DNA of 64,000 nt, taken from IMG/VR virus record IMGVR_UViG_3300028920_000001, positions 124,001-188,000 of that record. One strand, written 5' to 3'. The notes beneath the pieces are model-generated. The model did no database searches. It saw only the letters and a list, made by a program, of their open reading frames with translations, and was not told the DNA's origin. This document shows positions 6,173 to 13,682 of this stretch, one piece after another (the stretch's first letter is position 1; every line of letters begins with the position of its first letter). A program made the translations under genes and the position numbers.

Positions 6173-6395
6173 GGGTGAGACAGTTTAGTCTCACCCGGAA
6201 ATTCGATATCTACAGAAGAACCTAAGCTGATCTGTAAAAACCGAACTCCAGGTGTCTTGAGGGCCAATAACTTGATTGGCCCTCGGCTACCCGGCATTTA
6301 CAGAGAAAGATAAATTTATCTGCAAAAGCCGAGGCCGAGAGATGGTTCCACCACCCTAGCATCTACTGACTAACCATAACCAGTAGAAGCTAGGG
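6173..6395 (-). ncRNA. structured non-coding RNA candidate (five hairpins)
   Basis: Stems at 6173-6196, 6204-6243, 6259-6284, 6292-6331, 6354-6395 directly 3' of tRNA-Phe. Confidence 0.55.
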
Positions 6396-6404
6396 TAGGT
6401 GTAG

Positions 6405-6477
6405 TGCTCCCGGCCGGAATCGAACCAGCGACGCCGAGCTCTTCAGGCTCGCGCTCTACCAACTGAGCTACAGGAGC
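6405..6477 (-). tRNA. tRNA-Phe(GAA)
   Basis: Cloverleaf; CGAGC-CTGAAGA-GCTCG; 3' A-CTA. Confidence 0.92.
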
Positions 6478-6494
6478 TGGAAAACCTTGACGGG

Positions 6495-6534
6495 CGGTGT
6501 CTATGGAAGAACCGAAGCTGATCCATAGAAACCG
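6495..6534 (-). repeat. 40-nt hairpin motif copy C
   Basis: CGGTTTCTATGGA-N14-TCCATAGACACCG with C(TTCG)G tetraloop; related to 6204, 6292, 13602. Confidence 0.7.
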
Positions 6535-6551
6535 CAGCTTTGCCGCCAAGG

Positions 6552-6626
6552 TGGTGACCGCAGGGGGAATTGAACCCGCCGTTGTCGGTGTGAAAAACCG
6601 ATTTCCTACCATTAGAAGATGCGGCC
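6552..6626 (-). tRNA. tRNA-Glu(TTC)
   Basis: Cloverleaf; TCGGT-TTTTCAC-ACCGA; encoded CCA. Confidence 0.92.
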
Positions 6627-6678
6627 GAACCTGTTTTTTAAAACAGATTGATTGAACCTGTTATGAAAAAGAAAATTC

Positions 6679-7230
6679 GTGAAGACTAAACGACGAATAA
6701 GAAAATGGAATACGGACTATTGGAGAAAACAATATATTATTAGAAAAGTTAAAGCAATTGAATATAAAGGAGGAAAATGTATAAAATGTGGATATAACAA
6801 ATGTTATGGAGCTTTAGAATTTCATCATAGAAATCCAAAAGAAAAAGAGTATGTGTGGTATAAATTAAGAAAAAGGAGTTGGAGAAATATTAAAGAAGAA
6901 TTAGATAAATGTGATTTAGTTTGTGCTAATTGTCATAGGGAAGCACATCATGATCCTTCTCTCTTAAAGAAAGCAAAGGAGTGGAGAGATAAAATTGATT
7001 CAAAAATCCCAATAATAGAAATAAACTGCAAAAATTGTGGAAAAGTATTTAGACCTGTGAGTCATAAAATCCAATTTTGTTCGCCTAAGTGTTCCGCTAA
7101 ATCTCAAGAAAGAGTTCAATGGCCAAAAAATTTGCCACTACTTGTAGCTAAGTTATCAAAAAGAGCGGTAGCATTCCAACTCGGTGTATCAGACAAAGCT
7201 GTAGCAAAAAGACTTCATAGCCATCATTAG
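6679..7230 (+). CDS. HNH endonuclease with Zn-finger and HTH tail
   Basis: CxxCGY..C..ALEFHH...CDLVCANCHREAH; GVSDKAVAKR HTH; GTG start. Confidence 0.88.
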   Translation: MKTKRRIRKWNTDYWRKQYIIRKVKAIEYKGGKCIKCGYNKCYGALEFHHRNPKEKEYVWYKLRKRSWRNIKEELDKCDLVCANCHREAHHDPSLLKKAKEWRDKIDSKIPIIEINCKNCGKVFRPVSHKIQFCSPKCSAKSQERVQWPKNLPLLVAKLSKRAVAFQLGVSDKAVAKRLHSHH

Positions 7231-7848
7231 TGTCCCGGGCGGGATTCGAATCCGCGCGTAAAGCAAAGGTCTCGTTTAGGAAACGCGCTTCCCGCTACGT
7301 AAATTTCACAACCTGCCATGGCGACTCCCGCCCACCCCTAGTTGTTACCAGTTAGCGTCTGGTGTAGAGTTGGAGGGTGAGCCAGATCGTCAAGAAGCTT
7401 GGCAATGGCGGGTCGAGGATCGCCTACCTGCTCAAGTCCGGGTACGTCTTGAAGGTCCACCGTTACAGAGCGACGAGGGATAACCAAGTCGAAGCCAGGA
7501 TTTACTATCTGGCTCAGAAGATGGGGGTCGGACACCACTTCGCTCGATGTCGGCTGAGTCCTCGTGGGCTCGTGATGGAGTACGTTGACACGTCGATACG
7601 AGACGACCCAGGGCGGGGCTTTCCTTGGTGGGTTCGTCTCATTGACAAGTATCAGGTGGGGCTCACCCGGGACGGTCGGCTGGTGGCCTACGACTACGCC
7701 AACCTGTGGCCCCAAGAGCCTACTATCTGGTACGACGGGTTGCGCTACTTCCTACTGAAAGAGGACTCGACGAAAGGACCCCTGGCGGACACTCTGCGCC
7801 TCTTTCCTGGTGTGAGTTTGAAGTGAGGTTCCTTTGAGCCACCGGGAC
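7231..7848 (-). ncRNA. tmRNA-like RNA with non-Ala acceptor stem
   Basis: Acceptor GTCCCGG/CCGGGAC-A; T-loop TTCGAAT; long discontinuous 5'/3' helix; pk1-like pseudoknot; GC-rich. Confidence 0.55.
7377..7826 (+). CDS. protein kinase-like protein (minimal/degenerate)
   Basis: GNGGSRIAY, VLKV, E, VMEYV, GRLVAYDYA motifs; GC3-rich codons; catalytic-loop region atypical. Confidence 0.55.
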   Translation: MSQIVKKLGNGGSRIAYLLKSGYVLKVHRYRATRDNQVEARIYYLAQKMGVGHHFARCRLSPRGLVMEYVDTSIRDDPGRGFPWWVRLIDKYQVGLTRDGRLVAYDYANLWPQEPTIWYDGLRYFLLKEDSTKGPLADTLRLFPGVSLK

Positions 7849-8085
7849 TTAACTCTCCATAATGAGAGTTACTAAAACTTCTTCGGGAGTAAGAATTATA
7901 AATCCAGACGTATAACCCGGCTTCATTTTTGCAATTCGTTCTATACACTGTTCACGGCTCGAGAAATGACAGGCATGTCTAATGCTGCTGGTATATTCAT
8001 ATTCATGCCCATCAGACCCTTTAATTAATTTTACATACCAGTTAGTCCCATATCCACCATTTTGAATCACCCATGGGTAGTTCAT
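7849..8085 (-). CDS. hypothetical protein, C-terminal motif
   Basis: Ends ILTPEEVLVTLIMES*. Confidence 0.8.
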   Translation of the reverse strand: MNYPWVIQNGGYGTNWYVKLIKGSDGHEYEYTSSIRHACHFSSREQCIERIAKMKPGYTSGFIILTPEEVLVTLIMES

Positions 8086-8828
8086 TAACCTAGCCGATTT
8101 TGAATAATGGGACGATTAAACCAATTATTATCGTCACTTTTAACTTTTTCAAATTCAGGACGTGATAATTTCATTCTACCAACCACCTTTTCATCATCCT
8201 CGATTCTGATATAAATTCCTTCCATCAAAATTGAATCATCAGTTCCTTCCAACGATTTCAAGTGTTTTTTCCAGTCGGGAGTCTTGAAATTAGAAGGACC
8301 AATGAATTGGGCGAAATTATTCACCTTGCCGAAGATTCCTTGGAAAAGAATCGGTGCAGTTGGTAATTCTGTTAAAGTAAATGCTTGACTGAGCAAAGCA
8401 TGCCGCTTTGGTGTCGAAAGAAACAAGTCATTTTCTTTATCATAAACATCATACTCGACAAAATAGCCAGGTAAAGCATCATAGAAGACACGATGCTTAG
8501 CATAGAGCCACTCACCAAATAAAAGATAACGAGTTCCAAGAATTCGCTCTAAATCAGTCTTTTTGGAATAAGACCATTGTTTGAATAAATTAAATTGGCG
8601 TTCTCTTGGTCCACCAACTAAATAATGGCCTCGACTTTGCAATACTAGCCTATCATCAACTTCGGTTTGAGGAACTTCAAAACTGATTCCAACATTAGCT
8701 CCGTCAAGCTTTTCAGTCACGTATACTTTAAGTTTACCCCATTCTTTATAAATGTCGTCTCGAAGAACTACCTCGAGCCGTTGAGTTTTCGGAAATTTAA
8801 TCATCTTCCTCCATAATATAATCAACAA
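8085..8828 (-). CDS. RNA ligase (Rnl2-like ATP-dependent nucleotidyltransferase)
   Basis: TEKLDGAN (motif I), FGEW, YDVYD, EGIYIR, RMKL; start likely MIKFPK (~8804). Confidence 0.88.
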   Translation of the reverse strand: MLIILWRKMIKFPKTQRLEVVLRDDIYKEWGKLKVYVTEKLDGANVGISFEVPQTEVDDRLVLQSRGHYLVGGPRERQFNLFKQWSYSKKTDLERILGTRYLLFGEWLYAKHRVFYDALPGYFVEYDVYDKENDLFLSTPKRHALLSQAFTLTELPTAPILFQGIFGKVNNFAQFIGPSNFKTPDWKKHLKSLEGTDDSILMEGIYIRIEDDEKVVGRMKLSRPEFEKVKSDDNNWFNRPIIQNRLG

Positions 8829-9111
8829 TTAATTCATAACCCATATGTTCAAGCTCATCATAATCATGACGTTCAGAGTCTATATACGCTCCGTCTTCAT
8901 TTATTCCAATATATTGGAAATAATTTTCATATAAACGAAGAGCTGTACGTATTTTTCCAACTTCATTATGAATTCGAACATGGCATAACACTTTAGACGG
9001 AATACTTTTAAAAATCCTTAACGCATTATCATCTGAAATTAAAACAGTTTCAGATCCGTGCTTTCTAAGCTGATCTCGAACATATTGAAATTTTGTTTCT
9101 GCAAGATTCAT
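8797..9111 (-). CDS. hypothetical protein, variant C-terminal motif
   Basis: Ends IVDYIMEEDD*. Confidence 0.75.
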   Translation of the reverse strand: MNLAETKFQYVRDQLRKHGSETVLISDDNALRIFKSIPSKVLCHVRIHNEVGKIRTALRLYENYFQYIGINEDGAYIDSERHDYDELEHMGYELIVDYIMEEDD

Positions 9112-9419
9112 TAGCTATCCATTATCAAAGCTACCATAGTTTCTTTTGGACCAAGGACTTCAAAATCTGAGAACGGATACTGTTTACTTACATCTGCTCT
9201 CCATCTTTCCAATTCAGATGTAAGAAGCATCAAAGCTTCATTTTCATCTAAGAAAAACGTAGCATTATAAATGTTACCTACAAATTTCATTCCTGTATTC
9301 GATCGTGCAAAATATACTTGCGCGCTTGGTTCATAACCACCAATTACTTTCCATTTTCCATTATATTTAATTACATAACCATAACCTTCGTCATGGGCTT
9401 TAAAATGAGCATCAGACAT
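9111..9419 (-). CDS. hypothetical protein, C-terminal motif
   Basis: Ends VLGPKETMVALIMDS*. Confidence 0.8.
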   Translation of the reverse strand: MSDAHFKAHDEGYGYVIKYNGKWKVIGGYEPSAQVYFARSNTGMKFVGNIYNATFFLDENEALMLLTSELERWRADVSKQYPFSDFEVLGPKETMVALIMDS

Positions 9420-9658
9420 TATGATTCCATCAATCTGGCTATCATAACCTCTGCTGGGTTTAAAATAGTGAAATCTGAACGTATACTATCTTCGTCAACT
9501 AACGCATCCTCAATAATTCTTTCACACACAAATTGGCTAGAAAATAAAGCTGCTTTAGCAATTTCATTTATATAATTCTCAGCAGCTCTATAACTATGTG
9601 TAAAATAACCTAGATCTTTATGCCTAATCACCCACTTATCACCCCAATTACACATCAC
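9419..9658 (-). CDS. hypothetical protein, C-terminal motif
   Basis: Ends ILNPAEVMIARLMES*. Confidence 0.8.
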   Translation of the reverse strand: MMCNWGDKWVIRHKDLGYFTHSYRAAENYINEIAKAALFSSQFVCERIIEDALVDEDSIRSDFTILNPAEVMIARLMES

Positions 9659-9921
9659 GACTCCATTACCGAAAGTAATAACACCTTTTCAGGAGCATAA
9701 ATCTCAAAATCGTTAGCAAGTAATCGTAGATTCCGTGACTTATACCATTTAATAGCTTGCTGAGCTTCTACATAGGACGAATAATGAGTAGCATCTTCAA
9801 TTCTGGGCACTAGGAAAAAAGTGCCGGTAGCATTATGACCAAAGTACCCATCATACCCATCTCCGTCAAAATAAACAATATAACCTATACCAATTTCCAT
9901 TTTATCAAATTTTAAGCCCAT
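9655..9921 (-). CDS. hypothetical protein, C-terminal motif
   Basis: Ends IYAPEKVLLLSVMES*; ORF-track start lies inside tRNA-Thr so moved to the first downstream ATG. Confidence 0.75.
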   Translation of the reverse strand: MGLKFDKMEIGIGYIVYFDGDGYDGYFGHNATGTFFLVPRIEDATHYSSYVEAQQAIKWYKSRNLRLLANDFEIYAPEKVLLLSVMES

Positions 9922-9937
9922 AGTGTAATTTACATAG

Positions 9938-10008
9938 AGCCACCCCAGAGAATCGAACTCCAATCAGTTGTTTACGAAACAACTGCTCTACCATTGAGCT
10001 ACGGTGGC
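9938..10008 (-). tRNA. tRNA-Thr(CGT)
   Basis: Cloverleaf; GTTGT-TTCGTAA-ACAAC; G7.G66 mismatch; 3' T-CTA. Confidence 0.88.
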
Positions 10009-10012
10009 ATAG

Positions 10013-10084
10013 CGCCCCTGAAGAGAATCGAACTCTCCTCGTCTGATCGACAGTCAGATAGCCTCACCAGATGCTTACAGGGGC
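10013..10084 (-). tRNA. tRNA-Asp(GTC)
   Basis: Cloverleaf; TCTGA-CTGTCGA-TCAGA; 3' G-CTA. Confidence 0.9.
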
Positions 10085-10746
10085 ATATTTAAAGCTTGTT
10101 GTTTAGCCCAGTATCCGACAGGAGGGGTTTTGATTCCTCGCTTGTCGCAACGTTTCTTAATGGCTTTGTCAGAAACGCCAAATTTCTTAGCCAACGTGGT
10201 GACAGGTGTTTTCCAAATTAATTTTGCCAATTGGACGTCAGATGGCCACTTAGTCTTTTCAGTAATATGATCAATATTGTGATTAAATTTCTTAGCCATC
10301 TTTTTATAACATTGTCTACTACAAAATGGATATTTAAGGTTTTTCTTATGAGATCTCTTAAACTGTTTTCCACAATTACTGCAAGTTAACTCTTCAGCTT
10401 CTTGCCTTCTATATTTTTCTATCTTCATACGTTGTTTTTCTATTAGTTTTTGTCGAAGCTCGTCATGAATTTCTCTATGACAATTGGCGCAAACCAATTC
10501 ACATTTATCCAATTCTTTTTTAATTCTCTCAAATGATCTAGAATCTCCTTTAGAAATCCTAAGTTCCTTCTTAGTTGGATCTCTATGATGAAAATCAAGA
10601 GCTACTAGACACTTACAATATCCACATCGTTCACATTTACCACCTTTATACTGAACTGCCCTTTCTTTAATTTTTCTTCGATGTTCAGCTACTCGTAGTC
10701 TAGCCAGTTCTTGCTTTAGTTTTAAATCCATACTAAATTTAACCAC
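10075..10746 (-). CDS. HNH endonuclease with Zn-finger and HTH tail
   Basis: Paralog of 6679..7230 (ALDFHH...CELVCANCHREIH; GVSDKAIKKR); stop overlaps tRNA-Asp 5' end. Confidence 0.88.
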   Translation of the reverse strand: MVKFSMDLKLKQELARLRVAEHRRKIKERAVQYKGGKCERCGYCKCLVALDFHHRDPTKKELRISKGDSRSFERIKKELDKCELVCANCHREIHDELRQKLIEKQRMKIEKYRRQEAEELTCSNCGKQFKRSHKKNLKYPFCSRQCYKKMAKKFNHNIDHITEKTKWPSDVQLAKLIWKTPVTTLAKKFGVSDKAIKKRCDKRGIKTPPVGYWAKQQALNMPL

Positions 10747-13496: not shown

Positions 13497-13682
13497 TACC
13501 CCGGACGGGAATCGAACCCGCTCCGCACCCGTGGTAGGGCACAACCCGTGGCCTTCAAGGCGATCAACTCTCTATCTCCAGCGGGCAAAGACCACGCTAT
13601 CCGACATTTACAGGTGAACTCGAGCTCATCTGTAAAAGCCGTTTAACCTGACCTAAAGCTCTGACCGTTAAGCTACCGAGGT
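13497..13682 (-). ncRNA. tRNA-like RNA with ~125-nt structured insertion replacing the anticodon loop
   Basis: Acceptor ACCTCGG/CCGGGGT-A, D-arm GCTT-AACGGTCA-GAGC, T-arm GCGGG-TTCGATT-CCCGT; 186 nt. Confidence 0.75.

Follow-up and report, generated by a model that had tools for sequence, protein, structure and literature searches.

A probable wreck of a tRNA-shaped RNA gene, its core replaced by a mini-kinase cassette, in the tRNA array of a jumbo phage

The stretch of DNA analysed here (the window) comprises 64,000 nt, G000:C1:124001-188000, of a 426,960-bp viral record with direct terminal repeats, a jumbo phage from marine sediment. Within the window, positions 7231-7848 form a 618-nt region that an earlier, sequence-only reading had proposed to be a minus-strand RNA resembling transfer-messenger RNA (tmRNA), with a kinase-like gene enclosed on the opposite strand. 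The region sits in a minus-strand array of transfer RNA (tRNA) genes, with tRNA-Glu(ttc) at 6552-6626 on one side and tRNA-Thr/Asp at 9937-10084 on the other, and is a sharply bounded island of guanine-cytosine (GC) content, reaching 56-59% GC compared to 32-38% in its flanks. As that reading had noted, the minus-strand element begins right after the stop codon of the gene at 7849..8085 and ends at the stop codon of an HNH endonuclease gene (7230). The region is very probably the wreck of a gene for a tRNA-shaped non-coding RNA, whose core has been replaced by a foreign cassette carrying a mini-kinase gene.

Local alignment to members of the RNA family described below detects homology only at RNA positions 1-20 (7848-7829) and 497-618 (7352-7231). 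The 5′ remnant (7829..7848, minus strand) is identical to the intact gene of a related contig, L018, at 18 of 19 positions, and 19-20 nt of it match two other members, L079 and L129. It contains the GTCCCGG acceptor strand (7848-7842), the dinucleotide TG at positions 8-9, the 5′ strand of the D-stem (GCTC) and a D-loop with GG, within which the homology ends. On the other side, the distal part and 3′ half of hairpin B remain (7314..7352, minus strand), about 39 nt that are nearly identical to L079 and L129, followed by a 20-nt insertion between hairpins B and C (7294..7313, minus strand) that appears as a gap in pairwise alignments with the same two members. The 3′ remnant (7231..7293, minus strand) is identical to L018 at 61 of 63 positions and matches the relatives' RNA in an nhmmer search with E = 5e-12. 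It consists of hairpin C (7293-7279), the GAGACC 3′ strand of a closing helix (7273-7268) whose partner strand is absent, a linker, the T-arm (7255-7239), the acceptor 3′ strand (7238-7232) and a discriminator A (7231). The terminal features described from the sequence alone were accurate: a 7-bp helix between GTCCCGG and CCGGGAC, then A and CTA; a T-arm GCGGA-TTCGAAT-CCCGC directly before the acceptor 3′ strand, with an A.C mismatch at its loop-closing pair; and a third acceptor pair C3-G70, so that the G3.U70 pair is absent.

The window has lost the 3′ strand of the D-stem, and with it a complete D-arm, the anticodon-like arm with its conserved AAAAACGGAG loop, the 5′ strand of the closing helix, all of hairpin A and the 5′ strand of hairpin B; of the family's features it keeps the acceptor stem, the T-arm (flawed by the A.C mismatch), hairpin C and the closing-helix 3′ strand. 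The earlier remark that the element has no D-stem therefore holds for the window, where the absence is due to deletion; relatives have GCTC/GAGC at that place. The hairpin A motif does not occur anywhere in the entire 427-kb genome, and searches of the rest of the genome yielded neither the RNA in intact form nor its missing half. With the family's covariance model (R1), the window copy reaches 19.1 bits, less than the ordinary tRNAs of the same window and far below intact members (45-179 bits). Moreover, the loop-adjacent pair of the T-stem (G53-C61) is G-C in 60 of 60 distinct members and A.C in the window, and position 9, a nearly invariant A in the family, is G. These changes at family-constant positions fit a relaxation of constraint after disruption. 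Judged from its sequence, the window copy is a fragment rather than a working family member.

Between the remnants lies a 476-nt GC-rich cassette (7353..7828, plus strand), which replaces the part of the RNA core equivalent to positions 22-174 of the intact L079 member. The cassette is foreign to the RNA gene: it has no homology to any intact family member, and its GC content is 56-59% versus 41% for the window. It consists essentially of one open reading frame (ORF) and the 24 nt upstream of its GTG start. The ORF (7377..7826, plus strand) encodes a minimal protein-kinase-like protein of 149 aa, with homologues of 40-45% identity on phage-like contigs and a match to PHROG 4301; the antisense ORF of the earlier reading is thus a real gene. 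A profile search of 1.84 billion representatives identified 1295 clusters (representative clusters at 50% identity) at E <= 0.001, whose proteins are mostly 105-160 aa long and end right after a conserved AYD[YF] motif, corresponding to A104-Y105-D106 in the cassette ORF. Because most relatives end just past this motif, the conserved kinase domain is taken as residues 1-108 (7377-7700), and residues 109-149 (7701-7826) form an extension without counterpart in most relatives.

The protein carries the signature of a kinase, with a Gly-rich loop, the Lys of strand 3, the Glu of helix C, and the catalytic and DFG-like Asp residues. Across 72 sequences, G11, K26, E39 and D106 are invariant, and G9 and D90 are nearly so. 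An AlphaFold2 (AF2) model of the ORF built from these 72 sequences has a predicted local distance difference test (pLDDT) score of 86.5; an earlier model from 4 sequences (pLDDT 46) was not used. The top Foldseek matches of the model in the PDB are all kinases, with E values of about 1e-4 (Rio2, NleH1/2 and OspG, then CDK and PknB), and the profile matches SteC and aminoglycoside phosphotransferases (APH) in the PDB over the N-lobe. The predicted model confirms that the cassette ORF is kinase-like as a fold. Like Rio2, NleH1/2, OspG and SteC, it has the N-lobe strands, the Lys/Glu pair (K26, E39), the hinge and the Asp residues (D90, D106). In contrast to these small kinases, its domain is only about 108 aa long and in the family usually stops after the DFG-like motif, with the C-lobe missing; TM-scores are only about 0.45, at 10-19% identity. 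This mini-kinase family, with about 1300 representative clusters at 50% identity and a domain of about 108 aa, is uncharacterised. Further, in an aquatic metagenome run (X3), two 151-nt contigs match the cassette with 97-99% identity at 7370-7520 and 7633-7783, and HNH fragments of the same run are only about 88% identical, which hints that more divergent phages share the cassette.

The family to which the remnants belong extends beyond this phage. An nhmmer search detected distant homologues in two further jumbo-phage loci, and retrieval with a two-motif pattern gave 75 loci in metagenomes, 16 in IMG/VR and 11 in prokaryote genomes, 8 of which are Myxococcota. The R1 covariance model, built from three minimal members with a hand-derived structure, matches 72 loci, of which 60 are distinct, with scores of 45-179 bits. 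The distinct members are 118-283 nt long (median 212), lie mostly within large-phage tRNA arrays, with sporadic Myxococcota copies, and come from soils, sediments, wetlands and Myxococcota genomes; examples in alignment A8, which holds 56 further loci, are L018:5225-5477, L013:1679-1941, L079:913-1190 and the minimal member L067:1864-2018. Each member has a 7-bp acceptor stem, a D-arm, a 4-5-bp anticodon-like stem, a variable arm and a canonical T-arm. A 10-nt loop caps the anticodon-like stem; it is nearly constant while the surrounding stems covary, and has neither U33 nor a variable anticodon. Because its sequence is constant amid covarying stems, the loop is not an anticodon loop. The variable arm, 90-180 nt long, consists of a closing helix and three hairpins that form a four-way junction.

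Covariation in the R1 alignment is strong: standard pairs fill 94.5% of cells, both partners vary at 31 of 41 pairs, and the score of 0.52 compares to 0.15 in shuffled alignments and at most 0.10 with slid partners. Four stems covary (acceptor, D, anticodon-like and T), as do hairpin B and the helix that closes the variable arm. Hairpin A (GGUUGC-GGAU-GCACC) hardly varies, and in hairpin C the changes are confined to one side. The 10-nt loop (AAACG) might also form a tertiary pairing with hairpin C (CGUUU), an element fixed by the search pattern; one variant, in L068, is suggestive. A tRNA gene lies within 1 kb of 45 of the 60 members, and these neighbouring tRNAs, 181 in total, without exception share the strand of the RNA. 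CCA is encoded after the discriminator in 17 of the 60 members, and G3.U70 is present in only two (L070:8586-8828 and L075:6285-6548). The acceptor stem of L075, GGGGCTG/CAGCTCC, is presumably the same as that of E. coli tmRNA, which suggests that some family members could be charged with alanine.

The Myxococcota copies are single and chromosomal (L089:7288-7510, which is G001:C1:7879288-7879510, and L083, L085-L088, L090 and L167). Their neighbours are unrelated genes of housekeeping type, including an FHA protein, a signal peptidase, a sigma-54 activator and a major facilitator superfamily transporter, and are not integrases; within the Myxococcota order, only 2 of 101 sampled genomes carry the RNA. 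No protein gene is conserved beside the RNA across the 60 loci, where the best cluster, HNH endonucleases, occurs at 5. Three further pattern matches, in metagenome-assembled genomes of Cyanothece, Bryobacterales and Bacteroidota (L080, L081 and L084), are not matched by R1 at E <= 1e-5 and may be divergent or larger RNA variants. No Rfam 15 family covers these RNAs, the best match being that of the tRNA model to one minimal member, at 37 bits and with a huge insertion, and literature searches found no description of the family.

Three classes of known RNA share parts of this architecture. Like tmRNA (RF00023, ssrA), of which phage-encoded copies exist, the family combines a tRNA-like acceptor stem and T-arm, no decoding anticodon and a large structured insertion between the two halves, and, as in tmRNA, G3.U70 occurs in two members and an encoded CCA in some. 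In contrast to tmRNA, intact members have a true D-stem and an anticodon-like hairpin, their extra domain is at the variable-arm position rather than between P2 strands, neither a tag reading frame nor PK1-PK4 was found in them, and most are without G3.U70; the tmRNA model matches the family only at the T-arm, and weakly. Class II tRNAs (Leu, Ser, Tyr and Sec) resemble the family in their cloverleaf, in an extra arm between the anticodon stem and the T-arm, in their location within tRNA arrays and, apparently, in being processed and CCA-ended. Their extra arm is a hairpin of about 10-20 nt, however, whereas that of the family is 90-180 nt with a four-way junction, and the family's 'anticodon' loop is a conserved 10 nt without U33. 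The Y RNA-like YrlA (RF02553) is likewise a non-decoding mimic of the D-arm/T-arm elbow, with phage copies and a location near RtcB RNA-repair genes. YrlA has its free ends in the Ro-binding stem and a closed acceptor-like stem; in the family, unlike this layout, the acceptor stem is made by the free ends. Matches to YrlA within the family's loci are weak and fall on ordinary tRNAs.

The balance of evidence leans slightly towards the ends of the 618-nt region deriving from a previously undescribed class of tRNA-shaped RNA, common in large-phage tRNA arrays and sporadic in Myxococcota, that would be a CCA-ended, non-decoding tRNA mimic scaffolding the junction domain and the fixed 10-nt loop, with the window as a natural knockout by the mini-kinase gene that segregates against the intact allele within one population. 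Tentatively, the intact RNA would share the transcription of the tRNA array and the maturation pathway of tRNAs, and would use its tRNA body to display the conserved junction domain to a tRNA-binding factor; it might, for example, act as a decoy or adaptor for such a factor of the host or phage. The tRNA-like top half without a decoding function that underlay the sequence-only reading is a fair account of the intact family, of which the window holds only a fragment.

Contigs of related phages, gathered through their near-identical Rnl RNA ligases, show three states of the locus: cassette-bearing, without the RNA gene, and with the RNA gene intact. The cassette-bearing state is found in a 428,825-nt contig (L017) that is identical to the window. 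Contigs L014, L015 and L016 (89% identical) carry Rnl, an 80-aa gene, a 90-aa gene and tRNA-Glu, and have neither the RNA gene nor the HNH gene. The intact state is found in L018, which is 97-98% identical in both flanks and has the order Rnl, 78-aa gene, extra 90-aa paralogue, a 253-nt RNA gene (L018:5225-5477) and the same HNH gene after it. The more divergent L013 (Rnl 83% identical at the protein level) has a 263-nt RNA orthologue (L013:1679-1941). Both of these RNAs begin with the same GTCCCGG acceptor strand as the window, but a normal D-arm (GCTC...GAGC) follows. Metagenome contigs were also compared over 6300-8900. One relative has 366 different bases in place of 6664-7898; in another, the tRNA-Glu region is joined straight to 7230-7293, after which the sequences diverge. 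A 909-nt contig (L012) is identical to the cassette-bearing allele over 7104-7979. Because L012 and L018 both come from sample ERZ27252234, the two alleles coexist there, and the intact (L018) and kinase-replaced (window and L012) alleles provide a natural comparison.

A replacement history would account for this arrangement. One or more recombination events would have swapped about 150 nt of the RNA core, from the D-loop through the 5′ strand of hairpin B, for the 476-nt GC-rich cassette, which brought a ribosome-binding region and the mini-kinase gene on the opposite strand, in the same orientation as the HNH gene. The RNA remnant would thereby have lost its ancestral function, and the locus probably now acts as a plus-strand pair of HNH and kinase-like genes, whose working unit would be the gene for the kinase-like protein. 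The suggestion that a tmRNA had been disrupted by gene insertion comes close to this account, in that a structured RNA gene has lost its core to a kinase-like gene; the RNA was not a tmRNA, and the event was a replacement rather than an insertion.

The alternative put forward from the sequence alone, that the region encodes a functional 618-nt tmRNA-like RNA with a P2 helix, a pseudoknot (pk1) and a resume codon, which would accept a non-alanine amino acid or serve as a decoy for SmpB or trans-translation, is very improbable. Its acceptor stem, T-arm and discriminator A are real, and the wider family includes two members with G3.U70 and 17 with CCA. However, the long discontinuous helix said to join the two ends is at the level of shuffled sequence: the duplex between the 5′ 63 nt and the 3′ 54 nt has a free energy of -24.6 kcal/mol, compared to a mean of -22.3 (standard deviation 3.7) for dinucleotide shuffles, 76 of 300 of which were equal or lower. 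It is missing from the minimum-free-energy fold, which of the proposed helices holds only the terminal one; the fold of the full-length 618 nt is not unusually stable (z = -1.6). The proposed pseudoknot, resume codon and 5′ strand of the P2-like helix all lie in the antisense of the foreign cassette and are absent from intact relatives. The 3′ strands of that helix belong to the remnant, and intact relatives pair them locally with other partners: TTTCCT pairs inside hairpin C, and the partner of GAGACC, GGTCTC, is lost from the window; CAAAGG is the D-loop. Because the helix thus takes its 5′ strands from the cassette antisense and its 3′ strands from the remnant, the tmRNA-like topology is a by-product of the replacement. 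The T-stem, moreover, is damaged at a family-invariant pair.

Searches with the tmRNA model and other models agree. RF00023 gives no match at E <= 10 in 7100-8000, and the locus is not among its 7 matches in the genome (gathering score 47 bits); ARAGORN calls neither a tRNA nor a tmRNA at 7231-7848, and when introns of up to 700 nt are allowed it returns low-quality calls only, none on the true ends. At gathering thresholds, Rfam matches in the whole window are limited to its 12 ordinary tRNAs, and a permissive scan of 7100-8000 (E <= 10) gives two meaningless matches only. Besides lacking G3.U70 at this locus, the phage has its own canonical tmRNA at G000:C1:75832-76185 (minus strand; RF00023 106.5 bits; ARAGORN tag ANDNASLAIAA), about 55 kb from 7231-7848 and outside the window, about 48 kb before its start. 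Covariation among homologues, the comparison that had been proposed as a check, supports the tRNA-shaped family; the P2 and pk1 elements have no counterparts in intact relatives. For the window, the corrective is that a second, non-alanine tmRNA is not present, and that its tmRNA look stems from gene replacement in a tRNA-like RNA gene.

Other readings start from the tRNA-like ends. It is quite improbable that the ancestral gene was an ordinary decoding tRNA, for example a missing Ser, Tyr or Cys species, with an unusual intron, in which case the window copy would just be a disrupted tRNA gene. The phage has 37 tRNA genes, with the Ser, Tyr and Cys species absent, the Rfam tRNA model reaches 37 bits on one minimal member, and members are co-stranded in tRNA arrays; but the 10-nt loop without U33 keeps nearly the same sequence despite widely differing acceptor stems, the extra domain at the variable-arm position is the most conserved part, and brute-force removal of any segment yields no consistent anticodon arm. 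Further, L079 and L129 have a normal tRNA-Ser beside the RNA, and L079 also has a normal tRNA-Cys nearby. A recurrent 'Val(aac)' call, obtained after deleting every internal segment of four intact members, was rejected, as it is the conserved loop with mismatched stems. That the cassette is intron-like and is spliced out, by itself or with the phage RtcB or Rnl, to restore a tRNA-like RNA is hardly credible and the least probable of these readings. Both junctions do fall in ancestral loops (the D-loop and the hairpin B loop), and Rnl and RtcB are encoded nearby. However, the change was a replacement, with about 150 nt of conserved core gone from the locus and from the whole genome; Rfam detects no group I or group II intron; and the cassette is essentially one antisense ORF with its ribosome-binding region. 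A group I intron was likewise rejected for the inserts that intact members carry (about 80-200 nt), as there is no Rfam match and they are too short. Finally, the remnant may have been reused: read-through of the minus-strand tRNA array, trimmed at the tRNA-like ends, would yield a stable antisense RNA controlling the plus-strand kinase-like gene, which would be compatible with replacement of the RNA core and is unlikely. The retained acceptor/T-arm minihelix flanks the ORF almost exactly, and the genes and tRNAs around the region all lie on the minus strand, but only DNA runs contain the sequence, the T-stem and position 9 are altered at conserved positions, and the fold is not unusually stable.

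Replacement of the core of a tRNA-shaped RNA gene remains the favoured explanation, and several points weigh against it or the family on which it draws. L018 is not the direct precursor of the window, whose hairpin B remnant is of the L079/L129 type, and the ancestral allele was not observed. The alignment in which covariation was counted had been fitted to the model, and for most members the retrieval pattern fixed two motifs, in hairpins A and C, which inflates the apparent invariance of these hairpins. An acceptor/T-arm minihelix alone can serve as a substrate for RNase P and the CCA-adding enzyme; the remnant might therefore still be excised, and a read-through minus-strand transcript trimmed at the tRNA-like ends could conceivably give a processed 618-nt RNA. 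Among the runs that contain the region's sequence, all are DNA and no RNA run was found. Searches for the region in GenBank phage DNA gave no match, nor did exact-pattern and single-protein scans of IMG/VR with the T-arm, the kinase and Rnl. The family matters more than the window result, as a covariation-supported RNA with a giant, conserved variable-arm domain and no Rfam 15 model; it lends itself to study as a candidate for a new type of tRNA mimic in conflicts between phage and host.

The genes near the region include those for the Rnl and RtcB RNA ligases, EF-Tu and HNH endonucleases. The gene abutting the RNA 3′ end encodes a free-standing HNH homing endonuclease (6679..7230, plus strand; PHROG HNH families, E = 6e-25) and is convergent with the RNA gene. 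It is present in L018 and L017 and missing from L013, L014 and a further relative (X5), a patchy presence among close relatives as expected for a mobile homing endonuclease. A paralogous free-standing HNH gene lies in the tRNA array at 10075..10746 (minus strand). On the other side, the ORF list gives a 78-aa gene (7849..8085, minus strand) upstream of the RNA. It is one of several small paralogues among the tRNAs whose proteins end in ...L[IV]M[ED]S, here ...MES (7849-8085, 9111-9419, 9419-9658 and 9655-9963 on the minus strand of the window, and L018:4953-5225); their copy number varies by strain, with a 90-aa copy in L018 and L014 and none in the window. At the junction of Rnl and the 78-aa gene (8078-8088), small indels in L013 (L013:705-1688), X2 and X5 appear to alter or fuse both reading frames, and the gene call in L013 is 327 aa long.

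Two observations concern tRNA-like genes elsewhere in the genome. A long variable arm is normal for bacterial tRNA-Leu; the five tRNA-Leu genes at G000:C1:109783-113049, all those called by ARAGORN, are 75-76 nt long, which is the length of class I tRNAs. Further, the window contains a second long tRNA-like gene of 186 nt (13497-13682, minus strand), directly 3′ of tRNA-Glu(ctc). It has no ARAGORN or Rfam call, lacks the hairpin A motif, and scores 26.7 bits with R1 through its tRNA-like parts only. With its acceptor stem (ACCTCGG/CCGGGGT, followed by A), D-arm and T-arm, and about 110 nt between these two arms, it may be either a further unusual tRNA-like RNA or a tRNA with an interruption.

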